Below, one piece after another: positions 13,736 to 39,781 of a DNA stretch of 64,000 nt (the stretch's first letter is position 1; every line of letters begins with the position of its first letter). Origin of the DNA: Phaeosaccion multiseriatum. Taxonomy: Eukaryota; Protista; Ochrophyta, other classes. Where the stretch lies: contig OZ218952.1 of NCBI GenBank assembly GCA_965112735.1, positions 4,216,001 through 4,280,000 of the forward strand, read 5' to 3'. A program made the position numbers and the translations under genes. Below the pieces are notes generated by a model. The model had not been told where the DNA came from, did not search any database, and worked only from the letters and a program-made list of their open reading frames with translations.

Positions 13736-13793
13736 AGATAGACGGCAACAAGCTCCGGCGCACCAGATAGACGGCAACAAGCTCCGGCGCACC
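13736..13793. repeat. Perfect 29-bp tandem duplication
   Basis: AGATAGACGGCAACAAGCTCCGGCGCACC x2. Confidence 0.9.
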
Positions 13794-14611
13794 CCTCGTT
13801 CCTCCTTAGGGAGCTGCTGCGCTAGCTTGGAGTCGTGCCACTGTTGATATCGGAAGTTTAACATGGTCGGCACGGCACAGTTGCGAAATGAAGAGCGGTG
13901 GAAAGGTCTCCCCTTCCTGCTCTCCACTCCAGCCCTGCCCTGCTGATCTTTATTCACTTACACCCCTTTGGGTCTCTATAACTGATCAGCGATTTTCTCC
14001 TCTGTTGTCTTCCTCTTGGTCTCCCCTGCCTGTGCTAGAAAGAAGCAAGTCGCCACGTTTGGGAAGGTCCTCCCTCTCTTCTCCTTGCTACCTGCCCTAC
14101 CCCCTGCCCGCACCTATTCTTACTTTCTTTTCGTTTTCGTTTCCCTTCTCTTCCCTTCCCTTCTCTTCCCTTTTCTTCTCTCTTCGCCCGCTAGCATCCG
14201 CACATGGCATATGCACGTGCACTCTTGTTGCTGTTTGCTGCGCTTTTCTCCAGTGATCGACCTAGGTGGCACCCCTTTAATGCCGAAGATGCCTCCTCCT
14301 ACCACCTTCTTTCCACACTTTGTTGGTTCCTGCCGCAGCTAGCTCCAGCTCTGTCGATACCCACTAATGTAGTATGTACAGCATGATTCAGTCCCTTGCA
14401 CACCAAGTCAAGGAGGCCCTCGAGCAAGGCCGTGCGTGGAGAGAGAGAAGCGAAGCGAAGCAACGCAAAACAAAGCCTTACCTCTTACTCCTTTGCCCTC
14501 CGCCCTCCGCCCAACACCAGAAAATCTTTCACCCCCCAACCTCCACCCTCCTTTCTGCTTCACTCTTTCAGTCTTCCAGCCTCCCCTCGGGCCCCTCCTC
14601 TCCTTCCCTCC

Positions 14612-14789: not shown

Positions 14790-17700
14790 TCAAGCCTCCA
14801 GCTTCTCCCCCTCCTCTGCCGGCGCTATCTTGCCCTTCCCGTGGGTGGCCTGTACATCCTTATTGGTCTGCTCGATGGTGTTGGTCAGACCCCCCTCGCC
14901 GTAACGGTCCTCCGGGGGGAACATCTCCTCATCCGCGATGAAGCACATGAGGATTGTCGAGATGGCCACTCCGAACACCTTTATCATGAAGAGAAGCAAG
15001 AGCGAAGCGAAGCAAAGCACATGAAGACCGAGAAGCTAAAGGGAAGCAAAGAAGCGAGGAAACAAAGCAATGGGAGGCGAAAAAGACTACGCGAACGCAA
15101 AAAGAAGTGCGGCCCGTCAGGTTGGGGTGCGAGGGAGGGCTGTCAGCTCTGACAATCCCCCCAGTGCTTCCATCGCTGTCCTACCGCTTTGCTCCAATCC
15201 CATTTCCTCCCTCCCTCCCTCCCTCTCTCTCTCTCCCTCCCTCCCTCTCTCCCTCCCTCCCTCTCTCTCTCTCTCTCTCCCTCCCTCCCTCCCTCCCTCC
15301 CTCCCTCCCTCCCTCCCTCCCTCCCTCCCTCCCTCCGCTCCCTCCCTCCGCTCCCTCCCTCCCTCCCTCCCTCCCTCCCTCCCTCCCTCCCTCCCTCCCT
15401 CCCTCCCTCCCTCCCTCTCTCCCTCCCTCCCTCCCTCCCTCCCTCCCTCCCTCCCTCCCTCCCTCCCTCCCTCCCTCCCTCCCTCCCTCCCTCCCTCTCC
15501 CCCGCCCTCCCTCCCACTTCCCTTCTTCTCCCGTCCCTCTCTCCCGTCCCTCTCTCCGTCCCTCTCCCTCCCTCTCCCTCCCTCCCTCCCTCCCTCCCTC
15601 CCTCCCTCCCTCCCTCCCTCCCTCCCTCCCTCCCTCCCTCCCTCCCTCCCTCCCTCTCTCCCTCCCCTCCGTCCCCTCCCTCTGCGCATCACTCACCCCG
15701 GTGAACATCTTGGCCACAAACATGGAGAGGATCCAAACGACAATGGTGATGCCGATGAGGCCGTGGAGACTGTCGGCCATGGAGGCGTCAGCCGCGAGGT
15801 AGAATATGAACGCAGTCGCCAGCGGAATCATAACCTGAGGAGGAATCAAGTAGTCAAAAGTAGGAGTAGAGGCATATGGGGGAGGGTGGGAGGGTTAGTT
15901 CGCTAGGATAAGGGGAGGGGCAAGCGCTCGCTTTGTCCTGGTCCGTCCTCTCTCTTCCCCTCCTTTGTTCGTGCTGGATGGAGACTAATAATCTGGAGCT
16001 GAAACTCTCGTTCCCTTGACCCATGGTTGGCCAATTGCAGTGCGAGTGCCAATGCCGACGGCAGGGTCTCCCTCCTTTTGATCTCTCTCTGTCACTCATA
16101 CTCTCTCTCTCTCTCTCCGTCCCTCTATTTCTCTTTCACTCTATCTCTCTCTCTCCCTCTCTCTCCCTCTCTCTCCCGCCCTCTCTCCCCCTCTCACCCT
16201 CTCTCTGTCTCCCTCTCCCTCTCTCTCTTTCTCGTTCTCCCCCTCCCCACTCTCTCACCTTTCCGAGAATGCACACAACCTCGGAAACCATGGAAACGGC
16301 AGCGACGCGCAGAATGTTCCGCGTAATGAGGAAGAAGGCCTTCCTTGCCGCCTTGCAGAAGCTGTAACCGAACATCGCAGTTTGAATCTGAGAACGGGGG
16401 AGGGGGGGGAGGGGGTTGGATGGCGGGTGAGAGAGTAGAGCATGCAGAAAACGGTCAAGCACACTCCCGCACTCAAGCAATCACACACTCACGCCCTCGC
16501 GTCCTCACGCACCACACCTTCCCTTACTCCCCACAATCATCTCACTCATTCAAGGCACTCACGTATGCGTTCTTGTTGAGGAATTTCATGCACTTTTCGA
16601 GGCACCAAAGGCAGCACTGCACGCAGCACAGAATCATCTGGATGATCTTGTTCTTGGAGTCCTTGGCCTTCTTTTGAAAGTAGGCCACAATGGCGCGGAT
16701 GGTCTTGATAATGGCAATGATGAGCGATCCGAAAGCCGCGGTGCCGCAGTGGTAGAAGCTGCTCACTTTGACGGAGCGGACGACCGTTTGGTTTCCAATC
16801 TCGCCCTTGTCTCTGCAAAAGTACCACATGGAGACAGACATGGCCACGATAATCTGCCCCAGCGCCACGATGAACTCGGATGTCCAGTAATAGCAGAAGA
16901 GCAGGAACAGGCCTGCGTAGCGCATGTTGTCGTCGTACGTGAACACCTGTTTGCAGGTGCGTGCGTGTGTGCATGCGTGCGGTGGGAGCGAGGGAGCGAG
17001 GAGGCAGGTGTTCGGCCAGGTTTGGTGGGGGTGGGAGGGGAGGGAGAAGGAAGGGTGAGGGGTGAGGGAGAATGGAGTGTAAGCAAGCGTACATGGTAGA
17101 GTATGATCCGGGGGCAGGCGAAAGAGAGAGGTGGGGAGTGGGAGTGGATGCCGCCGAAAAGACCACAAGCTCGGGGCAGAGCAGAGAATCCCATTCATGC
17201 GCCCCCCCCCCCGCCCACCCTTCTACCCTCCCACCCTCCCCGTGTTTTCTCCTTCTATGACCTCTCCTCGCTCCATGAAAATCCCACGCCCGCCACTCCT
17301 CTCCACTTACCTTAATGGGTAGGCCATTGTAGGTCCCCGCCTCGATGTTTCCGGCCGACGCCAGGTAAATGGTGTAGATGAACCAGGGTACGAGGAAGAA
17401 GAGGAGGCCGAGGGACTGAATGACGGGGAAGAGCATGATGAGCTTCATGGCGTTGACAGCCCTGGCCGCCTCTTTGGTAATGCCAATGGCGAGAAGAATG
17501 CGCTTACGTAGCCAGAGCATGAGGCACATGTGCAGAAAGGCGCATCCGTAGAGGGCATATCCGAGGTACTCGCAGCCCTGAATCGCCGTGTCAGAGTGCG
17601 ATTTTGGCTCCTCTTCATTCGCCCATGAGCCCGCCGTGCTGATCAGCATTGTGCCTCCGGCCAGAAACAGGACGAGAATAGACCCCACAAGTGCCCAAAT

Positions 17701-18405
17701 GATGAAGGCGAGGACCCCCGGGATGCGCATAAAGAGGAGGAACGCAAACCCCATCACCATGGCAAAGAAAACGCCAAAGCCCATGATCAGATACTTGGCC
17801 GTGAAGAGGTCAGCCGTGAATTCGTCGAACCAGTCGGAGGCGCCTTCAGACACTGTACCATTAAAGGTAGTATTCACATTGGCCGAGACTGCCATGTTGA
17901 GGGCCGAGTTTTCAGCCGTGTCCAGAGCCTCGTTGAGCACGCAGTAGTTCAAAATGTCGGTGGTGTTGAGCTTCACCAGGCAGTTGCCGGCCGCCATCTG
18001 AGTGTAGCCCTCCGTCGTGTCGTACACGAGGGTCACGTTGTTATAGACGTCGGGCATGACGCTGTCTATGCAAATAAACTCCTCGTAGTTCTCTATCTCG
18101 GGGCAGGTTTCCACACACACGCCCTGCGTGCCAATATAATACAATTTCGACTTGTCCTCCACCCCGGCGCTGACTCCACAGATGCGGCCGGCATAGTCGA
18201 TGCCGTTGAGCAGCCTCGCTGGATTTCCGGCGGGGAGGCTATCGTCCGCGATGACTCCCGTCACAATGAGGCCCAAAAATGTCATGGCGCACCAGGTAAG
18301 CACGAGCAGCAGAATAAAGAGGACATCCGTGCACTTGCGATCGCCATCGACCTTAAAGTCGGGGGTTCCCTCCAGCTTCTCGTTATCCTCGTGATCATCC
18401 CCCAT
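14790..18405 (-). CDS. Choline transporter-like protein (CTL/SLC44 family); 5 exons
   Basis: Exons 18405-17311, 16946-16563, 16387-16259, 15834-15697 and 14978-14790 join in frame. Motifs: RKCTDVLF, GIDYAGRICG, RKRILLAI, YHCGTAAFGSLIIA, CLEKCMKFLNKNAYIQTA, FCKAARKAF, TILMCFIADEE. Confidence 0.95.
15206..15670. repeat. (CCCT)n/(GGGA)n microsatellite filling most of the last CTL intron
   Basis: Seen directly in the sequence. Confidence 0.95.
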
Positions 18406-18594
18406 CTTGCTGCTGTCTCTGGTGCCCAGGGGACTGCTGCCGCTGGCTATTGTTATGCTGTGCTTGCTCCTGCCCTCCTCCGCTTCGGCGTTTCCTCGTT
18501 TGAAACTGTCATTTATTGACTTAGTAGGGACCTCTCGCCCGTTTCCCCTTCATCCTGTACCTCTCTTGACGAGAGCCCAGACTGGGCGTCGTCC

Positions 18595-18938: not shown

Positions 18939-20938
18939 CCACCACCAGCAGCAGAACCAGCAGCAGCAGAACCAACAGCAGAAGCAGCAGCACCAGTAGG
19001 ACCAGCACCAACGCCATCAGAACCAGAAGCAGAAGCAGAAGCTACTGCAGCAGCAACAGCAGCAGCAGCAACAAGTTTGGTCGACAGTGAGGAGGAGGGG
19101 GGCAAGGGGTGCAGCACCGGCGACCGACATGGGATGATTTCTTCCATGGCCCTGGCCACAGTCAACGCAGCAGTGAGCGCAGGCCTGAAGGATCATGAAC
19201 AGCGGAAACCGGGACGGGAGGCGAATCACGTCGTGGAGGAGAGCGGGCTGATTGTCCGGACTCCCTCTCTCCTTGGGCGGAAGTCGCTGATAACGGCGAC
19301 GAAGAACGGAGATGTAGAAGCGGTCTCTAGCGTTCTGTGTCGGCTGGGGGGGGTGGGGGGAAGGATGGCAGCAGGGGCGCTGGTGGAAGCAAGGGCAGAT
19401 CACTACAGGGAAAACAGCAGCCGGAGGGAAAGGAGTTTGAGTGTTATCTGGAGGAGAGAGGAATGTGGAACAACACACCCTTACTCCTCGCCCTTCAGTA
19501 CCACCACGTCGAAATCGCCGACCTTCTCATCAAGGCCGGGGCTGACTGCAACGCCGTCAATGAACGAGGCGCCGCCCCCCTCCTCTACGCGTGCTTGGAA
19601 GGCCTGTCCACCCAGGCAGCTGATCTCATTGAGCGAGGAGCAGTAGTGGACCCAACCCTCACGGCCTTGGTGTATCACAAGGCCACCGACAGCAATGGAC
19701 ACATGACGCCCCTGCTCGCAGCCGCCGTCGGAGGACACACTGAAATCGTCGCCAGTCTTCTCAGGGCTGGGGCTGACGTGAACCGGGTCGTTGTGTCTGA
19801 GAAGAAGCAGAAGCAGCAAGCGCGTGTGGATGCAACAGCAGCAGCAGCAGCAGCAGCAGCGGCAGGAGGAGGAGGAGGAGGAGAGAAGGCTGATGGACGA
19901 CAGGGGGTGCCATCGACAGCCTCCGTCGGGCTGACGGCACTGATGGGAGCGAGTGAGTACGGACACTTGGAAGTCGTGCGTTGCCTCCTCCAGCACGGCG
20001 CATGTGTGCACTACACGAATGACGATGGGAGTCACGCCCTTCACCTCTCTGCGAAGAAGGGTTGGGAGGAGATTGGTGTGGCTCTGTTGGAGCACATTTC
20101 AAGCTCCCGTCCCGCCACAGCAGCAGCAGCCACCCCCAGCAGCGGCGAGCAGGGGAAAGGTGGGACAGAGGTCACAGCGGAGGAAGAGGAAGAAGGTATG
20201 GCAGGGACAGGCACAGCAGCAGCAGTAGGAGGAGGAGGAGCCACAGTAGCACAAGCGAAAGACGTGGTTGCATTTGCCAGCGCCCCGAACGACAAAGGCT
20301 CTACTCCTCTGCACCTCGCCTCCTTGTATAACCTCCCCCTTCTCTTGACCAAGCTGCTGGACCTGGGTGTACATGCCGACCCTAGAGACCTTCGAGGCGT
20401 TACGCCTTTGCTCTACGCTTGTCAAAACCCGGGCTCTACGGGTATTGCAAGCACCCTGCTCGCTGCGGGGGCAGACTCTACAGCTGTGGACAAGCATGGG
20501 CGGACTCCGCTAGCAGCTGCGACGAGGTCGAGATCTCGTTTATCATCTTCTCTCGGACACAAAGACATGGTAGCCATACTCCTGGAAGCGAGTGAGAAGA
20601 AGAAAGAGGAGGACAAGAGGAAGCAGTCTAACAAGGGAATGGGCAAGGGCAAGAGCACGAGTACACTGTCTACAGGGAAAGTGTCTCAGGGAAGGAATGG
20701 GGAGCAAGCGCACGAGGAGGAGAAGGAGGAGGTGGAGGAGGAGGATTGGAAGGATGAGCAGGGCGAGCAGGAGAATGAGCGGGGCTCTCGTCAGGGCACA
20801 AGTGTCGTCGCTGATGAGTCGTATCAGACCGTACGGGGCAGCAAGGTGATTAGGGTGGAGGAGTACGATGCCGCCCGCAAGAAGAACTACCTCAGCAGTG
20901 CGATGGAGGAGGAAGGCGCCTCGGAGACCGACGAATAG
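18648..20938 (+). CDS. Ankyrin-repeat protein with N-terminal MGCxxS (myristoylation/palmitoylation); apparent frameshift near 19335-19360
   Basis: ORF 18648 begins MGCAASAK and reaches the repeat-like SLITATKNGDVEAV. ORF 19337-20938 has multiple ankyrin repeats (TPLLLA, TPLLAAAVGGH, TALMGASEYGH, ALHLSA, TPLHLA, TPLLYA). The frames switch near G8/G6 runs. Confidence 0.8.
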
Positions 20939-22613: not shown

Positions 22614-25600
22614 ATGTCCTCTGTGCGGCAGAGGGATCAACAGCAGAATGCGATCCAGAGGCCGGAGCTGACCAGGCAAAGGCCAAGGCTGCATTTGAAG
22701 CGACGGAGGCCAGGCGGAAAGAAGTTTCTGTCTGCGTGTGTGTGCCTATCGCTGCCGCTCTTCTGTGGATCGTTGAGCCAAGACCGAGGTCTGGGCGAAG
22801 TTCTATTTGGTGGTGCAGCAGACGAGACAGGAAGCCACGCCTCTTGCCTCGGTGACAACGGTTGGGGAGATGTACAGTGTGAGCATGAGTGGCAAAAGAA
22901 GGAAATGCACAGGAAAATTCAAGCCACTACCTACGCCGAGGAGATGAAAGGGGTCGGGGGGGGGGATGCAGAGTGTCCGCCGGAAGGTGGAGGTGGATCT
23001 TTGGATCGCACTTGCCAAGGGCCAGGCCAAGGATCCCCGTTCTCGACTCCGCCTGGGTCGGCGGGACCGCCCACAACTGTTGCTGGGCCCGCGGCATCAA
23101 GCTTCCACACCTCTTTCAAGCCGGGGCTCCCAGCAGACCACATTTGGTCCTCGTGTGAGTACTGCGGTATCGAGGGCTACCGTATTGGGCAGACAGGCGG
23201 ACAAGAGCAGCAGCAAAAGCGGCAAATATGCCCTGCACTCCTGCGAGGAGTCATTTTTGACCCTTACGGAAGTCTCACGCTGCCCCTCCTGCACGGAGCC
23301 GACTACTCTGGTGACGGGGATGGCACAGGTGGAGGAGGCGGCAGCTCAGACTCCGAAAGCGAAGGAAGGGTTGTTACTGCTCATCAGAGCAAGTGGGCCC
23401 ACTTTTACAAACAGGACTCGGCGGAATGTTATCACACGCATAGACTGAGCCGCATACCGGCGGTTGTCACCCAGCAGCGGTTCGATTTGGCTGCTGCTGC
23501 TGGTGCTATTGCTGCTGGTGGTGGTGGTGGGGAAGCCCCATCGAATGCTCTGCAGTGCAACAGGTAGGCAACCGCTGTGTACTTTCCGTTACGTGTGCGC
23601 TTCTTTCACCGCTTCCCTTACTGTCGAGAATGTTGCCTGAGCTTTTCTTCGCTTCTCCTTTATTCCCCGTCTGTCGCATCCCATCATGCTCGCCTCATTC
23701 ATATTCCTCCTCCTCCTCCTCCTCCTCCTCCTCCTCTTCATCTTCTTCTTCCTCCTCCTCCTCCTCCTCCTCCTCCTCCTCCTCCTCCTCCTCCTCCTCC
23801 TCCTCCTCCTCCTCCTCCTCCTCCTCCTCCTCCTCCCCCTCTTTCCTTCTCTTCCTCCTCCTCTGCGCCCCTCAGGTGGATAGAGCGTCCCGTCTTCCTC
23901 ATACATCTGCTCACTTGGCAGGTAAGAGCGCGAGGGCGAGCAGGGAGGAGGGAGGAGGAAGGAGGAGGGAGGCAGACACAAAAGTCAAGTCTTTCTCCTC
24001 AAGAGGAGGGAAGAAGGAAGCAGATCGAGTCAAACCCTTCCACTTCTCACGACTCTCCGACCGAAGATGGTCAGCCTCCCAAACAAGTCGTTAAGCCCAA
24101 CGGGCGAAACGACTCCAGACTGCCGTACTGACCCCCCCCTCCCTTTCTCCCCCCTGTGTGTGCGTGCGTGTGTGTGCGCGCGTGTATGTGTGCATGTGTG
24201 GGCGTGTGTGTGCGTATGTGTGTGTGCGTGCGGGCGCTTGTGTGAGGCAGGTGGGGCACCTTCTGGTCGACGTGCTTGAACCGCTCTATCACTCCATGCT
24301 GAGTGCGTGGGGGGAGGTCAACACGAACGTTACACTCGTGCTTGACGTACACAACCCCGCAGAGAGGCCGGGCCTGCACGAAGCCCTGTTGGAGACCGTC
24401 TATCGCAGTGACACGCCGTTTCAGGTGGGGAGGAAAGAGAGAAGGAGCGGAGGGGAGGGAAGGGGAGGAGTGGGGAGGGAGGGGAGAAGAGAGGGAAGGG
24501 GTGGAAAGGAGAGGATAGAGAGGAGAGGAGAGGAAAGAAGAGCAGACAGGCGGTTCTGACGGGCGGATGGGCGGACCACTTGAGGCGTGTTGTACTTTCT
24601 GTTTGTCTGAGTTACTGTGGCTTGAACCTCTCGTTCAAAGCTTTTCCCAATCGCTTCCCTTCTGTTTTTTTGGTCGACATGCCCACTTCCTCCTCCTCTC
24701 CATCTCACCCATTCCAGGCATAGTTTCAAAGCCCTCCGTTCTTTTAGCTTTTGATTTTTTATCATAGACCTACCCGACATTTATCACAGCAGCCCTGTGA
24801 CCTACTTGCCGTGTCTACCTTTGTCACAGTCCTACCCTGCTTGCCGTACCTCAACACGACTTCTCACTCACCGCTTTCTTTTTCTCTGCGCTGCCGCCTC
24901 ACTGTCTGTGTGTCCCGCCTTCCCCTCCCTCCTTCCCTCCCTCCCTCCCTCCCTCCCCGCCTTCCGTCTCCTTTCTTCCTCCCCTCCCCTCCCTCCGTCC
25001 CCCCCTCCCCCCCTCCCTCTCTTCCCTCCAGCTGCTGCGCGCCTTCACCCGGCACCCCATCCTCAGCCTGTCTTCTCTGGCCCAGGAGGAGGGCCTGACT
25101 TGCTGCAGACACGTGTTCTTTGGTCTCGACGTGTCTTCTTCGTACTACGCCCTGGGGCAAGACGCCCACCCCCGGGTCCTGCAACCTGAGGTGAGCTGTG
25201 TGTGTGTGCCTGTGTGTATGCGTGTCCATGTGCGTTTGTGTGTGTGGGTGTGTGGTTGTGTCCATGTGTGCGTGTCTGTGTGTGTGCGTGTGTGCGTGTG
25301 TGCGCGCGTGCGTGTATGCGTGTGTGTACCCACCCCCACCCTGCCTTGTTCCCCGCCTACCTTTCTGAGACGGGGGCAGACAACCCTTGAGTGACAGAGT
25401 GGCCATGATCCCCCCCTTGTGCGACAGCGAGGTAGCAAGCACCTTCTCGACCAGGACTCACATCGCGCCAAGCGCCCTCCAGCTCTTCCTTCCTTCCTTC
25501 CTTCCTTTCTTTCTTCCTTTCTTCCTTCCTTCCTTCCTTCCTTCCTTCCTTCCTTCCTCCCTTCCTTTCTTCCTTTCTTCCTTCCTTCCTTCCTTCCTCC

Positions 25601-28600
25601 CTTCCTTCTCTCCTTCTTTCCTTCTTTCCTCGTTTCTTCCTTCCTTCTTACCTTCCTTCCTTTCTTTCTTCCTTCGTTGGATCTCCGCAGGCTCATTACT
25701 CAGACCAGCGCCTAGTGCATCGTTACATGGATTTTGCCGCCTTTTTGAAGCAATGGGACCCCCGCCAGCAGGAGCAGCAGGAGCAGCAGGAGCAGGAGCA
25801 GAAACAGGAGAAGGAGCAGCAGCAGGAGGAGGAGGAGAAGGAGGAGGAGCACCAGCAGCAGCAGCAGCGCCGGGGGGGAGAGGAGGAGAAGGGGCGGCAG
25901 GGGCCCGTGGTATCTTTCATAACGAGGTAGGGAGGACGTCTCCGAATCGTCACGGCAGACAAGAGGAGGGGGGGCGGGTACGTTGCTTTTCGAGAGGGGC
26001 CCCGGTTATGTGACCCCCCTACCCTCATCATTCTGCGGTTGCCGTCCTCTCGGCGTCTGCATGCGTGCGTACGTGCGTGCGTGGGTGCGTGCGTGAGTAC
26101 GTGCCTGCGTGTGTGTATGTCGCTCCTGTCTCTCTCTTGTGTATGTATGGACATGTCTTTGATCCATCGATCGCTTCTCTGTCCATTCCTCTGCCTTCCC
26201 TCCGTACATCATGCCCCTGATCTATGATCACCAACACGACGGCTTGTCAGGGACCCCTCCGCACGGCGCCACATTCTCAACCACGGAGACCTCGTCGCCG
26301 CCTCCCGAGGCCTTGTCACATGCGATGCATGCAAAGTAGAAGAGGAGGAGGAGGATGGCAGTGGAAGAAGAAGCGGTAGAAGCGACCCTATGGAGGAGGG
26401 TACACAATCCACGGGTAGTCCAACCCCGGAGGGTCCGTTCCCGGGGGGAAGGCTGGTTCGTGTGGAGGAGATCGAGTTGGAGCGATTGTCGTGGAGTGAG
26501 CAGAAGAAAGCGCTCTGGAGGACGGGTGCGTGCGTCATGGTCACAAACAGAGAGGGAAGCGAATGGCAGTGGATGGATATGTGACTTGAGAATCTTGAAC
26601 TGAACCTGAAGCGGAAACAAACCCCCCTCAAACCCTCAATCCTTCTCCGTTATTCTCCGACCATCTGCCTCTTGCTGACTTACTGTCCGTCGGGATGATG
26701 GCAACCCCAATCAATGCCCTTGGGTGTATGATTGTGTGTCGTGCGTGCGTTCGTGTTTATGCGTTTGTGCGTGTGTGTGCGTGTGCGTGTGTGTTATAGA
26801 TGTGCTGGTGGGCTCGTATGGCACGGGCCTGCACAACGTCCCCTTCATGCGACCGGGCACTGCGGTACGTTACGTAAGGAAGCGGTAGGTCCAGGGGGGG
26901 CGGGGGGGGAGGGCACGCACATACATATATACACAGAGAAACAGGCAGGCAGGTAGACAGGCACACACATACACACACACACGCAGGCACCTCGCTCGAC
27001 TGTCTGAATGACTGACTGACTGACTGATTGACGGACACGTTTTTCTTGACTGACTGCCGAACTGACTGACCAACCAACTGCCTGATTGAGTAACCGACCG
27101 ACTGACTGACTGACTGACTGACTGACTGACTGACTGACTGACTGACTGACTGACTGACTGACTGACTGACTGACTGACTGTTTGTGTTGCAAAGGTGATT
27201 GTGCTCATGCCACCGGATTGGTGCCCCTTTCTCTGGCACATGGCGAACCAGGTGAGGTTATGGTCGTGACCTCGATATATCCACATCGAACACATCGATA
27301 TCGAGAGAAGACAGGAGGACAGAGACAGGTTTTGTAGCGCCAGTCAAGGCAGCAGCAGGAGGCAGAGGGAGAGGGGGGGCAGACGCTTTGCGCCGCCCCG
27401 CTCGCCCTCTCCGCTCACTCCTTGCTCTCTCTGCCTGCCTCTCCCTCCCCTCACCCCGTGCTCTCTCTGGCCTAATTGCTCTCCTCTCACCTCTTGTTCT
27501 TGTCTCGGGCGGCGTTGCCAGGCCATCGCCAGCGGTCTCCGAGTCTACGCAGTCTGTCAGGAAGCTCGCCCTCCCGACACTACTCGGAGGTGAGTCAGTA
27601 AGTCAGAGAAGTCAGTAAGGAGGAGGAGGGGGGGGGGAGGACTGAGAAGCAGAACGTACGAGTTACGAGTGGATAAGGCAGGGGCGCGGGGGGGAGGACT
27701 GAGAAGGAGAACCCACGGGGTTGAGTGTGGCCACTTCCTTCGCTCAGATAAGCACCCTTTCTGTTCCGCCAGTTTCAGTTGAAGTGTATAGAACCTTTTC
27801 CATCACGTTATACTGCCATCGATCTGTCTACTCGTCGCCCATGCGGCTCTCTCTCCACCCTCCCAGGGCATTGTCACAAGAGTAAATATAGCACTACACC
27901 CAACCACATCTCTCGAGGCTCAGTGCGTGCGCCCCCCTCCAAACCCCCGCCCCTCCTCCTCCTCCTCCTTCCGGCCTCCTTCCCCTCTCCCCTGACGTAC
28001 TGCGCCACTGCATTCATCGATTTCATTCACAGATGGCACCGCTTCCACTGGAGTGCTCGAGGGTGGCTTCAAGCCCCCTGGTACTCCCGCTATGAGTCCT
28101 TCAGCGTGCCTGTGGGCGATTTCGAATCTCTCCTACGGCAGGCGCTGTTGACCGCCGCTTGGAGTGGCGATAGGAACAGCATCGGCAGTGAGAGACAGGG
28201 TAGCAGCGGCAGCGATAGGTACATCAGCACGAGCTGCAACAGTAGCAGCAAAAGCAGCAGTGGCAGCAGCGGTGGTAGTGGTGGTGATGGTGGTAGTGGC
28301 AGTAGTGGTGATGGCACGCACAACAACTGCAGAGCGGGATCGGGGTTGCTGAGAGGAGGCGGAGGAGAAGGAGGAGGAGGAGGAGGAGGAGGAGGAGGAG
28401 GAGGAGGAGTGCAGACGGAGACACACTGGAGATACGACGCTCTCCTGTCTGAGCCCGTGCCCTGGGCTTCACCCATCTCCGTGTGGGTGCACATCGGAGA
28501 CCTGACTGTGCAGAGCATGGAGACTGAGAGCAGCACCAGTAGCAGTAGCACCAGCACCAGTACCAGTGGTAGTGGTGGCAGTAGTAGGAGTAGTAGTAGT

Positions 28601-31600
28601 AGTAGTAGTAGTGGTAGCAGCAGCAGTAGCAGTACTGATGGCAGCAGCAGTATCAGTAGTGACGAAGGGTCATCATCGTCACTCCTGCGCCTCTCTGCCA
28701 CGCTGGAGGTGGTGATGAACGAGGCCCCGGAAACCGTGCTGGCGGACTTCCCCCTCCAAATCTGCCTACAAGTGGCCTTCTCCGGAGGCGGGGAGTCCTC
28801 CGGTAAGCTCTGCGTACAACCCCACGATCTCAATGAGATGGGTACGGTCTTTGTACGCATCAAGAAGGATGCTCTGCTGCAGGAGGAGGAGGAGGAGGAG
28901 GAGGAGGGCGGGGAGGAGAAAGGAGGGAAGGGGCGGCGACTACTGACGCTGATGGCGTGGATGGAGCATGTGCAGACGCAGAGCCGAGTCGTGGGCTCGG
29001 AAACCTTCTTCCCCATCGTCAAGTTGCTGCAGAATGATCAAGATGAAGATAGAGAGGAGGAGGAAGCGAAGGGCGGCAATGGTGGCAGTGATGGGGAGAG
29101 CTGCGATGATGGGTGGTGCAGAAAGAGCAATAGCAATAGCACTAGTAGCAACGGTAACAGTGGTGGAAAAGGGGGTAACTGGAATGTCAGGGAGTACCTC
29201 CACCCAAGGCTTTGGAGAGAGGCGTCAGCAGAAGGAGGACGAGGAGGGCGTGAGCCGGGCTCCGTTGCGATTCAGGTGAGGCACTACTGGCGCTGCCTCC
29301 TCCTCCTTGTTCTTCTTCTTCTTTTTCTTCTTCTTCTTCTTCTTCTTCTTCTTCTTCTTCTTCTTCTTCTTCTTCTTCTTCTTCTTCTTCTTCTTCTTCT
29401 TCTTCTTCTTCTTCTTCTTCTTCTTCTTCTTCTATACGAAATGTAAGTTGTATCGCAATCGTCGCCAACCTACCAACCCACAACCAACATGCCCATATTT
29501 CTCACACATCAGGTACAAATGCAGAATGGCACCACCGCGAGCGAAGTCATGGACCTTTCGCAACCCCTCTCGCCGCAGCAAGGCGTTGCAAAGCTTTGTC
29601 GCCGCATCGCTGCCTCCCCCGACCTGTGCGCCGAGATCTCCCACAAGGCTCACAGGCTGGCAGAGACGGATCTCCTTGCTGCTCGCCTGGGGCTGCCTGC
29701 CGTGCAAGTGGTGCCGGAGCCGGACAAGCCTTTTGTGTTTTTGCATCTTGAAAAGTGCGGTGGCACTAGTCTGCGGCACGTGATGGTGGAGGGAGCCATG
29801 ACGAGTGACAGAGAGTGAGTCGGTCGGAGTGGGAGTGGATGAGAGTGAGTGAGTGAGTGAGTGAGTGAGTGGGAGTAAATGGAGTGAGTGATTGAGTGAG
29901 TAGGTGAAGTGGGTGGGTTAGTGAATGAGTGAGTGAGTGAGTGAGTGGGTGGGTGGGTGAGTGAGCGGATGAAGTGGGTGAAATGAGGGGGGTGGGACAA
30001 GTTTGCGGAATGTGATGGTGGAGGAAGTCATGGCGAGTCGGAGAGATTGAGTGGGAAGTGAGTGGGAATGGAGTGAGTGAGTGAGTGAGTGAGTGAGTGA
30101 GTGGGTGAGTGAGTGAGGGAGGGAGGGAGGTGGATTGGGTGGAGTGGGGGTGGGAGTGGGAGTGAGTAAAGTGAGGAAAGTGGGTGAAGTGGGGTGGAGT
30201 GGGGTGGAGTGGGAGTGGGAGAGGGAGTGGGAGTCGGAGAGGGAGTGAATGGAAAAAGCGGAGTGGGTGGAGTGGGAGTGAGTGAGTGAGTGAGTGAGGG
30301 AGGGAGGGAGGGAGGTGGAATGGGTGGAGTGGAAGTGGGAGTGAGTGGGTGAGTGAGTGAGTGAGTGAGTGAGGGAGGGAGGTGGACTGTGTGGAGTGGA
30401 AGTGGGAGTGGGAGTCTGAGGGAGTAGAGAGGGTGAAGTGGGGTGGAGTGGGAGTGAGTTGAATGGTTGGAATGGGTGGAGTGGGAATGGGAGTCGGAAC
30501 GGGAGTGGATAGGTGGGGAGGGAACGGGAGAAAGTGAGGTGAGGGGACGAGGAAGGAGGGAAAGGAGGGAATGCCGGAGGGGCGTTTACCTCCCCTCTCC
30601 TACGTGAACCCAGTAATTTCACTTCCTGCTGCTCTTCTTTCCCACTCTCTCACTTCTCTTCCCCAACTCCCTCACACACGCGCGCTCACACACACACACA
30701 CACACATGCACGCACACACCCCAGGTTCTTCGTGCCGTGCTACATCCCCGGGGTGGAGGCAGGAAGTTTCATCTTCTCTCCCCGCACGGAGCACTGCGCC
30801 TTGTTCGACCTCTCGTCCGCAGCCTTGGCAGGGGGGATGGGGATGGGCGAAGGAGGGGTGGAAGGGGGGGCAGAAGGGGGAGCAATGGGGAGGGCAGAGC
30901 GCGTAGAGCGGCGTTTGGAGCGGCTCGCAGTGGTAGCAATGCACCATGCCAGAGGTGAGTAAGCTTCTGGTCTATCACCAACTGCTACTGCTACTTCTGC
31001 TGCTGCTGCTACTGCATCACCAACTGCTACTGCTGCTGCTGCGGTATCACCAACTGCTACTGCTGTTGCTACTGCTGCTGCTGCTGCTGTCGTTTTCCCG
31101 TTCCCAATGACGCTTAGGCTGGGACGTGTGGCGTGAGCTCCCCTCTATGCGACGCGAACAAGACATGTCGTGCTTTGTGATGCTTCGCGACCCCACAGAT
31201 CGGGTCATCAGCTTGTACTATGAGGTGAGTCAGGGAGGAAGGGAGGAAGGAGCTCGTCAAATGGTGAGCAAGCAAGCAAAGCGAGGGAGTCGAGCAGAGT
31301 CGAGCAGAGCAGCGACCGCCCACCTTGCTCACTGTATTGCTTCGTGCAAACGAACTCCTTCCTAACTCCTTCATCTCTCTCTAACTTCTTATTCTCTCTC
31401 TCCCTGGTCTGGTGTGGTGTGGTATGGTGTGGTGTGGTTTATCACCAACTGGTGTGGTGTGGATGGTGGTGGATGGACACGTGTGGTGGATGGACGTAAT
31501 GTGCATCGATGCGGTTGCTCTGGATCCGCATGGGCAGAGGCTGGCGGCCCGCACCGGAAAGGTACGCAACCGCACCGACCTCTCCACTTGGTGAAGAGGG

Positions 31601-33911
31601 AGGAAGGGAAGGAAAGACGGGGAGAGAGAGAGGACAGAGGGGCAGGGAGGGAGATATAGCAGAGATAGACGGAGAAAGAGAAAGAGACAGATGTATAGAA
31701 AGAAAGAGAGAGAAGGGAGCGAGAACAGATAAGGAAGAGAAGAGAGAGAGGAGAGACGGAATGGGAGAGAGAGAGAGAGGGGGACAAGGGCCGCTATCGG
31801 TTGGGACAAGGGCCGCTATCGCTATCGGCAGTAGGAAAGAAAGGTTCTGATCACAATCCCCCTGAGAAGATGAAGCAAGTCGGTCCGCTCTTCTCTGAGG
31901 CGCGGGCTTGACCCAACCAATTGGTGGTTGCTGCTTTGCCTCCCCCCCCCCCCCCCCCCTTACCCCCTGGCACTCCCTCCCCTCTCTATACCTTTCCTTT
32001 CTGGTGCCATTTGGTGCCGCCCCGCAGCCCCTCTCTGCCCTGAGCCCCAGCGAGCTGCGGAGAGTCCTTGAGGTGAGGGAGGAGGGGACGCGCGTGGTGT
32101 GGGCGCGTGTGGTGGGGGCGCATATGCTGTGGGCGCGTGTGAGACGAGATCCTCCCCCCTTGCCCCCTCTACCTGCCTCTCTGCCTGTTTGTTTGCTGGC
32201 CTGTCTGCCAGCTTGCCTGCCTGCCTGCCTGCCTGCCTGTCAGCCTGCCTACCTGCCTACCTGCCTACGTGGCTGCCCCTTGATGAATCTGCTCATCTGT
32301 GGCTGTTGATCTCATTCCATGTCTCAGACCTCTGTGTATTGCACTCCCTCCCCTCTCTCTCCTTCCTTCCCCAAAGGACGGGTACTCCGTGTACGAAGGC
32401 ACTTATATAGACGATGGAGTGATCGACGCGGGCTGCAAGGTAAGTAAGCAGAATTGGGGGGGGGCACAACCACCCATACTCCACACCGACGCTTAGCCTC
32501 CTTCTCCTCCTCTTACTACTCCTCCTCCTCCTCCTCCTCCTCCTCCTCCTCCTCCTCCTCCTCCTCCTCCTCCTTCTCCTCCTCCTCCTCCTCCTCCTCC
32601 TCCTCCTCCTCCTCCTCCTCCTCCTCCTCCTCCTACCTCCTGCTCAGATGATGTGCGGTGCCAAGACGCACACTGGCCGTAAGGTAAGCAGCGAAGTGGC
32701 TCCAGTGCCGTACAGTCTTGAGTTGGCGGGCGAGAGACTCAACCGTTGTGTGGTGGGGGTGCTACACGACTATGAGGTAAGGGTGCGTAAGGTCACGTAG
32801 GGAGTGCGCTGATTTGTGGTTGTTGTCATCTTCTTCGTGGCGAGTTTCCGAATCGACGTCTCTCGACTGGACTGGACTCGACTCTACTCCATTCTGCTCT
32901 GGGACTCTACTACTATACTAGACTAGACTCCTCTCTACTCTGCTCTGCCCTGCTCTGTTCTACTCTGACTCCGTATCACCAACTGCTCTCCTGTGCTGTG
33001 CTGTGCTCTGCTGTGCTTCGCTTTGCTCTACACTACTCTACTCCACTGTACTCTACTCTACTCTCTTCTCTCGACTCGACTCGACTCGCCTCTGCACTAC
33101 TCGACTCCTCTCTACTCGACTCACCGCCCCTCACCGCCCCTCACTCCTCTCTCCTCTCCTCTCCTTATCTGTACTCGATATTACTCCTCTCTCTGTGCTC
33201 TACTCTACACAACTCGACTCCACTCTCTTTCTGCTCTACTCATCTCTACTCTACCCTACGCTACTCTACTCTACTCCACCATTCCTCTCTACTCACTCTA
33301 CTCGACTCGACTCGACGTAAACGCGAGAGAGCAGACCACACGTCAGATGCTGCACTACTTCTTCCCGTGGATCCCTGGCCCGAGTATAGAGGCGCCGGAC
33401 CGTGTGATTCACAAAGGGGCCGCGGGGCAGGAGAAGGCACGAGACCTCTCGGCCGAGCAGCGGCAGGTGAGAGGGGAGGGGCGGGGAGGGGCGAGTAGGG
33501 GAGGGGAGAGGGGGGTACAACGACATGCACTCATGTCATAATACACAGGCACAGATCGATTGATACACAAGAGGAGGAGGGGGAGGGGAGGGGGGTCGTG
33601 AGGGTGTCATGAGAGGGGCACGCGTAGTGGCGTTGCTGTGCAGCTGTGGATGGAGCCGTGTAGTGTTTGGCTGAGGCCTTTCACTGCCTTCTTGGCCTTC
33701 TTGCCGCTTTCACTTGCTTTGCATGCTTGAGAACTTACGCCTCACCGTCCTCGACCCCCCCCCCTCCCTTTCTCACTTGTCTCGTCTGTCTTGTTTGTCT
33801 TTGTGGTGTAAGGTGATCGCTGAGCTGAATATTTGCGATGAGGGGCTGTACGAGCTCGGCTTGCGTCGATTCGAAGCCCAGAAGAGGGTGTTGAGCCTCT
33901 CACTGCTCTAA
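22614..33911 (+). CDS. GT61-family glycosyltransferase fused to a PAPS-dependent (Golgi-type) sulfotransferase; 19 exons, about 1467 aa
   Basis: Exons 22614-23563, 23876-23921, 24251-24424, 25032-25190, 25691-25926, 26251-26525, 26800-26864, 27195-27251, 27522-27589, 28033-29275, 29513-29814, 30725-30954, 31118-31224, 31538-31561, 32028-32072, 32377-32439, 32648-32776, 33335-33466 and 33813-33911 are all GT-AG and phase-matched (4404 nt). GT61 motifs: GHLLVD, FITR...RRHILN, DVLVGSYGTGLHNVPFMRPGTAVIVLMP. Sulfotransferase motifs: FVFLHLEKCGGTS, LRDPTDRVISLYY, LNICDEGLY. Confidence 0.8.
27007..27180. repeat. Intronic (GACT)n microsatellite
   Basis: Seen directly in the sequence. Confidence 0.9.
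29811..30530. repeat. Intronic degenerate (GAGT/GGAGT)n array
   Basis: Seen directly; starts at the GTGAGT donor. Confidence 0.85.
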
Positions 33912-34527: not shown

Positions 34528-35382
34528 ATGGGCACCACTTCTACAGTAGCAGCAGTACAGTTAAGCAAAGAAGGGGGCGGGCCCGTCGTGGCGGCGAGAG
34601 TGTGCGGGGAGAGAGATGCATTCACAGACCGCTACAGCCAAGGGAGGTCAACGGTGGTGGATCGAAGGAAGAGGACCAACGGCTTTGAAGACATCCCTGT
34701 CCACGAGAGAGAAGACTTTGGGAACGCGTATGAGGAGGCTTGTAAGTGAACGGCCTGTGCAGTAATGCCCTGGAAGCTTTCGGGGGAGAGAGAAAATGCC
34801 CTGAGCTTTCGCCTCCCCCCCCCCTTCCCACGTACACCACCTTTTCTTTTCTATAAGTGCTGTTCTTCTGTCCCCCTTTTTTCCTCCGCTCACCCCTCCC
34901 TGTACACAGCTTCACTCCCTTCGGCCTCCCCATTTTTGACTCCACCTCCCTCTTTTTGTCCCCTTTGCACACTCACAAACGCCCATGCCCACCCCCTTTC
35001 ACCAACCCTCTTCCCACACACATGCTTGATTATTCCAACACAACCAACAATACTCCCAGACGAGTTTTGCCGCAAGAATTTCCAAGGCAAGGCCAAGATG
35101 GGGCGGGACGATGCCAAACACGGTCGAGGAGAGTACCCATCCGCCGCGGCCTTCAAGCGTAAGCCTCCCGCAGCGCTGAGGGAGTACAGCAAGTGGACCC
35201 CGCACGAAAAGCAGAGCTACACAGAAGCCTACGCCGGCTACGGTAAGCACCTGGGCCTGGGGAGCAGGGGCGCGCGTGCCGCGAAGGGCATCTGCCTCAC
35301 GACGGGCACGGCGGCGGCGAAGAGATCAGCGCCCGAAGGCATGCCTACGATGCCCAGCATGCCCAATACGTCGTCGCCACCC

Positions 35383-35423
<41 letters not shown>

Positions 35424-36903
35424 GCTTTCCCTGCCCAGCCTTCCTCCCCCTCCCCCCCACACCGTTGGCGGATCTTCACGTGTGCCTAGCAACAGTCGTC
35501 GCAGCGGTAGCAGTTATATCAGTAGCAACAGCAGCAATAGCAGCAGCAGCAGCAATGCCCAAAGTGCTGCAATGGTGTCATCGGGCAGTACTGGTTCCGT
35601 GTATGGTGCTTTCAGCGGCGGCGTGCCAGCAACGTCGGTAGCCGTGGCGGCATCAATGCCAGGGGTCAGTACGAGCCAGGGTGAGATGACCTCGCCCTCA
35701 CGTGGCTACATGGATGCTCTTTTGGCGGCTGCTGGAAACGCTGTGGAAAGAGTAGCGACATCAAGCCGCGGCAGCAACAGCAGCAGCAGTGTTACTCGCG
35801 TCCCAGCCTTTCCTTCTGACGGAAGAGGAGGAAGAGTAGTAGTAGCAGCAGCAGCAGCAGGAGGAGGAGGAGGAGCAGGAGGAGGAGGAGTGTGGAATGG
35901 AAGGGGACCACCAGTACACCCAGAAACTCTACCCGCAGCGAGAGCAGTTGCAGCAGTGCCGTCAGTAGTGCTCGGAGGAGCAGGAGGAGTCGGAGGAAGA
36001 GGAGTAGGGTGGGGAGGGCGTCTGCCAACGGCGTCTGCGGCCCTTGCCGCCCTGTCGCCAGTTCTTGCCGCCCGTACTCCTACTACCTCTACCACTACGG
36101 CGACCAGCAGTCCGATGGCGATGACGACGACGACAACGATGATGATGAAGACAAGGGGCGATCCCTTACCTTCGACTACTGCGCCCCCTCCCTCCTCCTC
36201 CTCCTCCTCCTCCTCCTCCTCCACCACCACTACGGACCCGCTTGATGTCAGGGCCAGGAACGAAGCTCTGTGCCACGCATTTGAGGATCGTAACGTTTGC
36301 GACAGGCAAAAGATGCGAAAGCTTGACACGTTTGACCACATTCCCGGCCCGCAGCGCGCCGTCTACGAAAGTGCTTACGAGAAGGCCTATACGCTCTGGA
36401 CCAGAGAACTCATGGTGCGTTTCCGTTTCCCTGTGTTTGGCTGTGTCAACGTTTCTGTGTTGCCTCCCCCAGACGAGACCGGGGGGAGATGACTGGGGAG
36501 TGTTGTATTTTCTAGAGCAGCTTGATGGTGGTGCGTGTGTTTATGATAGAGTTTGTGCCTATCGAAGTAGCTGTATGGGCATATGGGTAGAGAAATCGTA
36601 GTCCCGTCTGTGAAAGGGGCCTACTATCAAGCTCTCCGCTTGGTATCTGTGTCTGTTGCTTTCACCTCGGTCGGTCGGTCGGTCGGTCAGTCGGTCGGTA
36701 TGTATCGTATTGCGAAAAGGTTTGGTTGTTGTTGCCGTGGATTAGTCAGAAGTCAACTGCAGCAGATCCGCGGCTCTACCACAACCCTTTTTCCGTGTGT
36801 TACCAATCCTGCCCCTGAGTTTGCTCCTTGCTTTCTTCTCTTGACATACACACACACCCACACGCACACCCACACGTGCACCCACCCACACCCACATGCA
36901 CAT

Positions 36904-36941
<38 letters not shown>

Positions 36942-39781
36942 CTCACTACAAGATGGGAAGACGTGACGCAGCGACGGGCAAGGCGGCGGATCCCCGGAGT
37001 GGCGACTCTGCTTCAGGGGTAGCAGGAGGGGGGGGGTCCTCGAGGGGGCGGGAGTGGGAGGAAGAGCTGAAGAAACGCTATGTGGAGGGCTTTACAGCTG
37101 CGAAGAGGGAGAAGAAGAGGAAGAAGGGGGCCCTCCCCACCGCAGAGGGAGGAGGAGGAAGAGCAGGAGGAAGAGCAGGAGGAAGAGCAGGAGCAGAGAC
37201 AACCACCACCGCGTCGGGGCAGGGTGCGAGGAAGGAGAAAGAGATCAAGAAGGGGGGGGGGGTTCCCCTCCCCCTCCCCGCAGAGGCAATCCCCGCAGAG
37301 GTAGCAGTAGGCACAGCGTTTGGGCGAAACGGAGAGGTGGGGCCGGGTGCGGTGGTCGGGCATGGCGCGGTGGTGGCTACGAGGTCGTCGTGGCTACCCC
37401 CCCCGCCTCCAATTCACACAAGCAGTGCAGCGAGTGGTGCTGCGAGAGCTGCAGTGAGTAGTGCACCAGAATGGCACCGTTCGCCTACTCACGGTGGTGC
37501 TCACGGTGGTGCTCACGGTAGTGCTCACGGTGGTGCTTCTCGCGGGGATTGGGGGCTGGACGCGGGAGGGGGGGTAAGGGGGATGAGGGGGATTGGGGCA
37601 GGGGTGGGCCCCATGGCGATGGAGATAGGGTTAGCAGGTGAGTCAGCACGTGGCTCGAGGCCGTCGCTCGATGGCAAACGCAAGAGCGTCGGCTTCAGCA
37701 GCAGCGTTGACAGTGTCAGCAGCAGCAAAGTCAGGGGTACTGGTAGTCATGGCCACCATCAGGGAGGCGGGGAGGGGAGCTTGAGAAGCAGCGTGCAGCA
37801 CGGCGGCGGCGGTGCCACGGCAAGAGGGGCGCCTGCGTTCGGCCATATGGACATGCTCGCGACGGCGGCGAGTGAAGCCAATAACGCGGAGGTGAAGGTG
37901 CGGCAGGAGCAGCCGGAGCAGCGGCGGGTGCAACGGCTGCGGCAGGCACAGCAGCAGCAGGTGACACTGATGCAGAATCCGATGGCAGTGGAGAAGCAAA
38001 GGCATCATTGCATAGAGCAGGGGAAGAGCAGAAGCCCCTCTGTGCTGCACGATGCGGCTCGACGGGGGGCTCTGCCCATCGTCCAAAGGCTGCTGAGCAC
38101 AAGGGAGGGAGGAGAGGGAGGCGCCGTTGAGAAGATGGAGGTGGACACAAGGGACAATGAGGGCAGCACAGCGCTGCACGTGGCGGCTGCTCTGGGGCAC
38201 GGCAAGGTCGTGGCCCTTCTTCTTAAGCACGGTGCGAATGTGGAGGCCATGGATGGGACGGGTTGGCGGCCACTCCACCACGCAGCCTCTGGGGGATGCA
38301 CCGCCGTTGTCGAGGTCTTGCTGGCAGCAGGCGCCAGTGTGCATGCAGTGGAGCGAGGCAGGGGTGAGACGCCGTTGATGAAGGCCAGGCGGGGAGGGCA
38401 CGTGGAAGCCATGCGCCTCCTCTCCCCTCCTTCTCTTCCGGCTGCTACTGCTGCTGCGGCTGCTTCTGGTGCCTCTGCCACTGCGACTACTACTGGTGCT
38501 GCTCCTGCTGCTCCTGCTGTTGCTGCCCCTGCTGCTGCTCCGCGCGCCACCAAGAGGCCGTGCTATGGTGCCCCATCCGCCAATGACGGTTATGCTAACA
38601 GTGCGAACAGTGGGAACACTTCCCCTTCGACCTCGACTTCGAGTACGAATGTAACTTCGACTCCCTCGAGTGTCTGTCTAGAAAAGAGGAACGATTTGCT
38701 GGAGATTATCATGACGTACAACGATTTGCTGGAGATTATCATGACGTACGTGGGGTCGGGCTGCTTCATCTTCGTAGCGCTGGTCAGCAGGCAGTGGAGA
38801 GAGCATTTCTCTTACTCTATAGTTGGGGGGTACAGCCTCTCAGTAGGGGGCAGTGGACAGCAGACCTCCACGATCACTACCAGCAGCGGTGAGACGGCTC
38901 AGATGAAGCGGGTGCGTCAACCTTGGACGTACCACCGCAGCGTGATTGAGTCCACCGAACGCTTGGCCTGGGCGAGGAGACAAGGCTATGAACTGTCTGA
39001 GGCCACCTTTCACACCGCCGTTCAGCATGGAGATGCGTCGGTGTGTGAGGCTCTCGTTGCGCTGGCCTGTCCGAGGAGTGACAACACTGCGCTGATTGAG
39101 TCGCTGGCAGCGCGGAACGAGCGGCATGGCATGAGTATCTTGAAGGTATTGGGAGGTGCGGACGGCAGCAGCAGGAGTAGTAGTAATGGTGGTGGTGGTG
39201 GTGGTGGTGGTGGTGGTGGTGGTGGTGGTGGTGGTGGTGGTGGTGGTGGTGGTGGTGGTGGTGGTGGTGGTGGTGGTAGTGGTCTTTCTGTCATGGACAG
39301 AGACACGGTTGCAATGGTCGAGACAGAGGAGGTGCTGCTTCCGCCTCCTTCCACTGACAGGGGCAGCGGCGGTGAGGGTGGCATCAGCAAAGGCAAGAGC
39401 AGCAACAACAGCGGCGGGGGGGGGACAAGTGAAATGCGTGCGGGCATGGGCAAGGGTAAGGACGAAGAGAAGGAGGTGGTTGGAAGGGAGGGTAAGGAGG
39501 CGAAGGCTGGGGCGGATGATGTGGGGGGTAGCGCAGCGGCCGAGGCTGTGCAAACGGCTCGGCAGCGTGTCAGGGAGGAGTCTTTGGGGCTTGCGTCCTC
39601 TCTTTTGAGCCTGGCAGCCCAGCAAGAGCGAGAGGGAAACTCTTCCAAAGCCCTGCCGCTGTATGAAGAGGCATTGGGCATACAGACGGGCCTGTTGGGG
39701 AATGAGCACGCGGAGACTGTGAGGGCGAAGGGCCTGTGGGGCAAGGCACACGGGATGGCCCGCAACATGGGCACCAGGTAA
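34528..39781 (+). CDS. Large protein (about 1470 aa): two copies of an unknown ~110-aa module, ankyrin repeats, an F-box-like/degenerate ankyrin region and a C-terminal TPR-like helix pair
   Basis: Exons 34528-34741, 35060-36414 and 36941-39781 are phase-matched. Ankyrin: STALHVAAALGH, RPLHHAASGG, ETPLMKA. TPR-like: ALPLYEEALGIQTGLLGNEHAET. The start codon is uncertain. Confidence 0.7.

Follow-up and report, generated by a model that had tools for sequence, protein, structure and literature searches.

The window analysed here is a stretch of 64,000 nucleotides from the ochrophyte Phaeosaccion multiseriatum (assembly GCA_965112735.1, contig OZ218952.1, positions 4,216,001 to 4,280,000 of the forward strand), and coordinates below are counted from its first letter. 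On its plus strand, from 22614 to 33911, lies an intron-rich gene that is predicted to join a glycosyltransferase-like domain of the GT61 family and a sulfotransferase domain of the type that uses 3'-phosphoadenosine 5'-phosphosulfate (PAPS). The region is eukaryotic, with about 57% G+C and introns rich in simple repeats. The enzymes that build and sulfate the matrix polysaccharides of algae are mostly unknown, and the pairing of glycosyltransferases with sulfotransferases is not readable from genomes.

The gene model is a reconstruction from the sequence, in which a chain of phase-matched GT-AG introns gives an open frame of 1441 aa without a stop (Table 1). The frame starts at the first ATG (22614), which has an in-frame stop upstream, and ends with TAA at 33909-33911. 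Its 4.3 kb of coding sequence is spread over 17 exons (16 introns) with neither stop nor frameshift; donors are mostly GTGAG or GTAAG and acceptors are pyrimidine-rich. The exon number is best stated as at least 17, and additional small in-frame introns are possible in the low-complexity stretches of exons 1, 9 or 11. Exons were curated by eye from the stop-free segments of the three plus-strand frames, splice signals, and blocks resembling both protein families. A naive dynamic-programming model based on codon scores was drawn into low-complexity sequence and split exon 1, and hand curation was used instead. A minus-strand open reading frame (ORF) at 28090-29022 was dismissed, being a low-complexity shadow of exon 9. 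An earlier sequence-only reading had proposed 19 GT-AG-linked exons; its matching phases and the lack of a stop between the two catalytic regions hold in our model, but the rebuilt chain has 17 exons. The start, the stop and the three motifs it had named (YGTGLHN, HLEKCGGTS and RDPTDRVIS) lie where it had placed them, and the junctions 27589/28033 and 29275/29513 were recovered exactly in the rebuild, which took its two ends from that reading. Over 27500-29320, DNA contigs from four public runs equal the window, simple repeats aside, and show neither variants nor joints, which means that exon 9 is not misassembled in that interval.

To score the spliced protein, local profiles were built from verified family members, which were fetched from viral and bacterial loci using DNA patterns for G-x-HGAGLTN and IPKTGGT; Pfam scans were made on single exons, and 200 composition-matched shuffles served as the control for each profile. 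All 1841 stop-free segments of the window, in six frames, were scanned with both profiles; matches came only from exon 6 for GT61 (10.1 bits) and, for the sulfotransferase, from exons 12 and 10 (14.6 and 11.5 bits). When the exons were spliced, the scores rose from 10 to 34 bits for GT61 and from 15 to 22-25 bits for the sulfotransferase; the signal comes from the spliced protein and not from any single ORF. The two domain identities proposed in the sequence-only reading are thus supported by Pfam matches to fragments and by profile matches that cross splice junctions, with both local profiles matching the spliced protein. Exon pieces compared with NCBIfam and with PDB sequences gave nothing meaningful.

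GT61 includes the plant N-glycan beta-1,2-xylosyltransferase, the arabinosyl- and xylosyltransferases of xylan, the animal proteins EOGT and POMGNT2, and many bacterial and viral DUF563 proteins. The Pfam model of this family (PF04577, Glyco_transf_61) matched exon 6 with two scores, 20.7 bits (E 5e-4) and 18.9 bits (E 1.9e-3), both under the cut-off of 27. Against the spliced protein, a 55-member GT61 profile reached 34.2 bits (E 9e-13 for one target; best shuffle -1.7) and a 19-member viral profile 24.6 bits (best shuffle -1.2); PF04577 was confirmed by Pfam for 17 of 17 viral and 10 of 10 sampled bacterial profile members. The domain alignment (31.9 bits, aa 580-703) spans junctions 5/6, 6/7, 7/8 and 8/9. 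In a MAFFT alignment, FSVPVGDFESLLRQALLT falls on the C-terminal block of the GT61 members, 10-15 residues from their ends. Further upstream, FITRDPSARRHILNHGDLV, encoded by exons 4 and 5 together, aligns to yisRskarrRkilNedele of the profile as a weak domain of -0.8 bits, the profile domain that covers the N-terminal blocks; by eye, VGHLLVDVLEP resembles Y-x-H-F-x-x-E-x-x-P and FITRDPSARRHILN resembles R-x4-R-x-x-x-N. Overall, the protein shares with the family the co-linear blocks S-x-x-EQ and G-x-[H]-G-x-G-L-x-N-x-x-F, followed by a C-terminal V-x-V-x-x-x-E-x-L-L block; counterparts of H-x3-D/E-x-x-P and R-x4-RR-x-x-N precede them in the same order, by eye. Residues kept are Arg508, Arg513/514, Asn518, Gln592, Gly604, Gly607, Gly609, Asn612 and Phe615. 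Homology of the domain at about aa 205-703 to GT61 is supported at the level of sequence. The algal protein differs from the family in being much longer, with long Q/E-rich and acidic inserts and a sulfotransferase placed C-terminal to the GT61 domain.

The signature itself departs from the family. Where GT61 members have G-x-H-G-A-G-L-T-N, the algal protein reads GSYGTGLHN, with Tyr606 in place of the motif His, Thr instead of Ala and His instead of Thr; in addition, the Glu that follows the signature by about 12 residues, kept in 96% of the 55 members, is replaced by Val624. Among 25 viral members that were fetched without fixing the His position, it is occupied by His in 14, Ser in nine, Tyr in one and Thr in one. 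The single member with Tyr, like its tandem neighbour with Ser, has Cys in place of the Glu, which suggests that His and Glu may be lost together; two His-carrying viral members have Gln there. The tandem genes, 376-aa paralogues on viral contig IMGVR_UViG_2703719317_000013, carry AYGAGFTN and ASGAGFTN (6718-6753 and 8870-8905) instead of HGAGLTN, and thus show the paired change of the algal protein. Tyr at the His position thus seems uncommon but natural, and appears to go with loss of the Glu. The Tyr had been called unusual in the sequence-only reading; it is indeed rare, found in one of the 25 viral members, but less unusual than was held, as the position varies (Ser, Tyr or Thr in 11 of 25).

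These substitutions bear on whether the domain is a working glycosyltransferase. One alternative accepts the fused protein but leaves catalysis to the sulfotransferase alone, the GT61-like domain being a glycan-binding or scaffolding module. Tyr606 and Val624 speak for it, as does the possible joint loss of both positions in the viral pair, in which Tyr or Ser goes with Cys. Most other strongly conserved GT61 positions are retained, however, and the natural variation at the His position may mark a subfamily with another donor; the long intact frame also suggests selection on the domain. We regard a purely binding or scaffolding role as possible, though the less likely of the two. GT61 domains do occur in larger enzymes: a viral contig encodes, at 11948-14422, an 825-aa viral or bacterial protein that joins pyruvyl transferase, GT2 and GT61 domains, so multi-enzyme glycan proteins containing GT61 exist outside eukaryotes.

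The C-terminal domain is of the Sulfotransfer_2 type, a family that includes heparan sulfate 2-O-sulfotransferase/pipe and Golgi carbohydrate sulfotransferases of the chondroitin/HNK-1 type. PF03567 (Sulfotransfer_2) matched exon 12 at 20.6 and 18.8 bits (E 5e-4 and 1.9e-3; cut-off 22), and a 97-member viral profile, of whose sampled members Pfam confirmed 15 of 20 as PF03567, scored 21.6 bits with the whole protein and 24.8 bits with its C-terminal part (best shuffle 0.6). The alignment (aa 1147-1289, 20.8-24.2 bits) spans junctions 10/11 and 11/12. A language-model feature search with exon 10 returned fragment clusters of sulfotransferases (PF03567, PF06990) at 0.89, taken as a lead only. 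In this class of enzymes the Lys of the loop, a His and the Arg/Ser motif are the PAPS-binding and base residues. Here, EKCGGTS (aa 1157-1163) corresponds to PKTGGTS and RDPTDRVIS (aa 1278-1286) to RnPydRlvS of the viral profile, at the spacing of the family. His1251-His1252, 27 residues before the 3'-phosphate-binding (3'-PB) motif, stand at the edge of an insert beside the His column of the profile, where the alignment is ambiguous. About 150 aa follow the 3'-PB motif, the right length for the C-terminal half of Sulfotransfer_2. Homology of the domain (about aa 1145-1441) to Sulfotransfer_2 is supported, and by alignment its PAPS-binding motifs (loop Lys and RDPxxRxxS) are intact, with the His pair as candidate catalytic residues between them. 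The algal domain resembles the family in its Lys loop, RDPxxRxxS motif and length of about 300 aa; it differs in lacking an N-terminal anchor of its own, in having Cys for Thr in the loop and in a C-terminal half that the profile does not recognise. Compared with the viral members, it also carries some 74 additional residues behind the loop.

The two domains are separated by about 435 aa of linker (aa 704-1140), close to the roughly 400 aa given in the sequence-only reading. The beta-rich segment described there is plausible: a single-sequence AlphaFold2 model of exon 9 places strands at exon residues 130-162, 217-229, 241-261, 271-277 and 304-312, at a mean pLDDT of 40.8 that marks it as low confidence. 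No relatives of exon 9 were found in Pfam, the feature-search atlas or metagenomes, and none of exon 5 in the atlas.

Is this arrangement a single gene or a pair? The last residue of the GT61 alignment, aa 703, lies 40 residues into exon 9, which stays open for 374 further codons. Because that exon holds both the C-terminal part of the GT61 domain and the linker, the linker is part of the GT61 gene, and the fusion hinges on intron 9 alone. Splice sites were ranked by leave-one-out matrices trained on the other 15 introns, with GT sites within 400 nt as competitors. The donor of intron 9 (CAG/GTGAGG, the slash marking the exon boundary; 11.2 bits) ranks first of 31 and the acceptor second of 66. 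Together with the shared exon 9 and a sulfotransferase part that has no anchor of its own, these sites make a single fused gene the best reading, and we predict it with fair assurance.

The alternative is that two adjacent genes meet here. A GT61-plus-linker gene would end at 29444-29446, or by polyadenylation within intron 9, and a separate sulfotransferase gene would begin at ATG 29489 or at a Met close by. Inside or beside intron 9 there are indeed an in-frame stop and an ATG, a phase-compatible join would arise by chance in one of three cases, and no RNA run with the locus was found. The particulars fit poorly, however. If the donor is read through, a (CTT)n repeat adds a tail of about 50 leucines before the stop at 29444-29446, and ATG 29489, the sole candidate start, follows that stop by only 43 nt, whereas neighbouring genes in the window are 0.9-1.7 kb apart. 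A sulfotransferase begun there has no hydrophobic segment and would stand alone without signal or anchor, and the choice of intron 9 sites is among the best available locally. We therefore consider two genes improbable. A silent or decaying locus, its frame kept open by chance or through the choice of splice sites, would suit the finding of neither RNA runs nor relatives in the searched collections, and low-complexity runs can hold frames open (as in the antisense ORF at 28090-29022), but it is very improbable given 17 exons with 4.3 kb of coding sequence free of stops and frameshifts and family-conserved residues of both domains placed on opposite sides of introns.

Several observations weigh against the single fused, bifunctional protein. 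Within the GT61-like domain, the N-terminal half resembles the family by eye only, and the substitutions at Tyr606 and Val624 have been described above. At the other end, exons 13-17, the presumed C-terminal half of the sulfotransferase, have no support from Pfam, profiles or hhalign; with hhalign, neither exon 15 nor exon 17 matched the sulfotransferase alignment significantly. The anchor hydropathy lies just below the usual cut-off of 1.6. Some splice sites were picked with the family consensus in mind (e.g., 26525 over 26495), a choice that can inflate profile scores by a few bits, not by twenty. Searches of public runs with the locus gave only DNA contigs of one sample and no RNA run. No orthologue or relative with the GT61-sulfotransferase architecture was found in the collections searched, and synteny was likewise lacking, as no GT61 or sulfotransferase gene lies near the choline-transporter-like gene in Chrysoparadoxa or Ascophyllum. 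The value of the finding is limited for now because the join is predicted and the GT61-like domain is possibly inactive.

An exhaustive HMMER search of exon 1 against 1.84 billion representatives returned 0 matches, exon 10 had no relatives in the word-indexed protein collection or in metagenomes, and a GT61 alignment headed by the 825-aa member, aimed at long fusions among word-indexed proteins, retrieved only close kin of that member.

With these points in mind, the locus would probably be one nuclear gene encoding a protein of about 1441 aa, arranged as a short cytosolic basic tail, a signal anchor, a stem, the GT61-like domain, the linker and the sulfotransferase. The segment at aa 38-54 has the highest 19-aa Kyte-Doolittle value of the protein (1.55), no second segment exists, and it is a probable type II signal anchor. 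The protein would reside in the Golgi, both of its domains facing the lumen, where the C-terminal domain would transfer sulfate from PAPS to a glycan. The GT61-like domain might either add the sugar that is then sulfated or, as Tyr606 and Val624 lead us to consider, merely bind and position the glycan. By fusion, the sulfotransferase would be supplied with a membrane anchor, and both steps would be kept together in fixed proportion. Addition and sulfation of the same glycan by one polypeptide, as the sequence-only reading had proposed, may be inferred from the two domains, and algal sulfated polysaccharide as the context of the product fits an ochrophyte near brown algae.

Two-domain enzymes of glycan synthesis are known from the Golgi: the NDST deacetylase-sulfotransferases and the LARGE and EXT pairs of glycosyltransferase domains. 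Like the algal model, they are type II membrane polypeptides that each combine two successive steps in the modification of glycans or matrix. In stramenopiles, the sulfotransferase family is expanded and prone to fusion, with JmjC dioxygenase-sulfotransferase fusions reported (PMC2938197), and a sulfotransferase-alpha/beta hydrolase fusion is reported from the brown alga Nemacystus (PMC6418280). Unlike the algal model, none of these pairs a glycosyltransferase with a sulfotransferase. The sequence-only reading knew of no characterised enzyme with this architecture, and a full-text literature search likewise found no natural glycosyltransferase-sulfotransferase fusion in the text it returned. 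The predicted arrangement is new, whereas both domain families are known.

If the fusion is real, it names a glycosyltransferase-sulfotransferase pairing outright, provides one recombinant protein to assay with nucleotide sugars and PAPS, and joins the few two-domain Golgi glycan enzymes as a further architecture. More tentatively, and with no great expectation on our part, the gene may belong to a lineage-specific set of Golgi enzymes that combine a PAPS sulfotransferase with various glycosyltransferases. Such a set would consist of modular polypeptides that add a sugar and then sulfate it, a logic that is not known to have been described in any organism. Each of these fusions would identify the pair for one linkage, and together they would form a catalogue of such pairs.

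Table 1. Features of the predicted fusion gene in the window (a slash within a splice site marks the exon boundary; ranks are among local candidate sites)
Feature	Coordinates	Strand	Details
Exon 1	22614-23563	+	aa 1-316; start, basic tail, signal anchor, low-complexity stem; donor CAG/GTAGGC
Hydrophobic segment	22725-22775	+	FLSACVCLSLPLFCGSL, aa 38-54, after KRRRPGGKK; only one in the protein
Exon 1 block	23454-23477	+	IPAVVTQQ; N-terminal part of the GT61-like domain; no Pfam match for exon 1
Exon 2	24247-24424	+	aa 317-376; VGHLLVDVLEPLY resembles the family block NYxHFxxExxP by eye; profile match there not significant
Exon 3	25032-25190	+	aa 377-429; acceptor cag/CTG after a pyrimidine tract, donor GAG/GTGAGC, phase 0/0
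Exon 4	25691-25926	+	aa 430-507; Q/E-rich insert, then VVSFITR
Exon 5	26251-26525	+	aa 508-599; RRHILNHGDLV, acidic insert, LSWSEQKKALWRT; in the GT61 domain alignment
Exon 6	26800-26864	+	aa 600-621; DVLVGSYGTGLHNVPFMRPGTA, the GT61 signature, with YGTGLHN at 26817-26837
Exon 7	27195-27251	+	aa 622-640; VIVLMPPDWCPFLWHMANQ; contains Val624
Exon 8	27522-27589	+	aa 641-662; AIASGLRVYAVCQEARPPDTTR; donor GAG/GTGAGT, rank 1 of 42
Exon 9	28033-29275	+	aa 663-1077, 1243 nt; C-terminal end of GT61 (FSVPVGDFESLLRQALLT, 28100-28153), then linker
Linker core	28421-29041	+	Non-repetitive blocks 28421-28513, 28682-28882 and 28934-29041, split by S-, G- and E-rich runs
Intron 9	29276-29512	+	237 nt, mostly (CTT)n; donor CAG/GTGAGG
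Exon 10	29513-29814	+	aa 1078-1177; stem-like stretch, 5'-phosphosulfate-binding loop FVFLHLEKCGGTS, with HLEKCGGTS at 29744-29770
Exon 11	30725-30954	+	aa 1178-1254; insert relative to viral sulfotransferases; ends in VVAMHHAR, candidate catalytic His pair
Exon 12	31118-31224	+	aa 1255-1290; 3'-phosphate-binding motif MLRDPTDRVISLYYE, with RDPTDRVIS at 31186-31212
Exon 13	32028-32072	+	aa 1291-1305, phase 0/0; splice sites only, skipping keeps the frame; uncertain
Exon 14	32377-32439	+	aa 1306-1326, phase 0/0; splice sites only, skipping keeps the frame; uncertain
Exon 15	32648-32776	+	aa 1327-1369; ELAGERLNRCVVGVLHDYE; like the C-terminal half of sulfotransferases by eye only
Exon 16	33347-33466	+	aa 1370-1409; weak acceptor, rank 15 of 42
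Exon 17	33813-33911	+	aa 1410-1441 and stop; VIAELNICDEGLYELG; like the C-terminal helix of the family by eye only

The flanking genes are nearly intron-free long ORFs (19331-20935, 34750-36489 and 36845-39778, all on the plus strand), whereas the fusion gene has at least 16 introns. The upstream one, 19331-20935, encodes an ankyrin-repeat protein, and the two downstream ORFs carry no assignment. On the minus strand, a single-exon ORF of 667 aa (16549-18549) encodes a choline-transporter-like protein (PF04515) that is 48-50% identical to proteins of the brown algae Ascophyllum, Laminaria and Ectocarpus and of Phaeothamnion, and 43% identical to that of Chrysoparadoxa; these matches point to an ochrophyte near the brown-algal clade, other than the species sampled, as the source of the DNA.

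Simple repeats crowd the introns of the gene. The 11-mer ATCACCAACTG occurs seven times in the window, always on the plus strand, against 0.04 copies expected: at 30974, 31016 and 31046 in intron 11, at 31441 in intron 12, at 32975 in intron 15, and at 63428 and 63453. Thus, five of the seven copies lie in introns of the fusion gene, within CTG/CTA-type microsatellites. Intron 10 contains, at 29982-30520, a G-rich tandem repeat of about 500 bp with a GC skew of 0.94 and units resembling GAGTGG or GTGAGT, which creates dozens of decoy donor sites.

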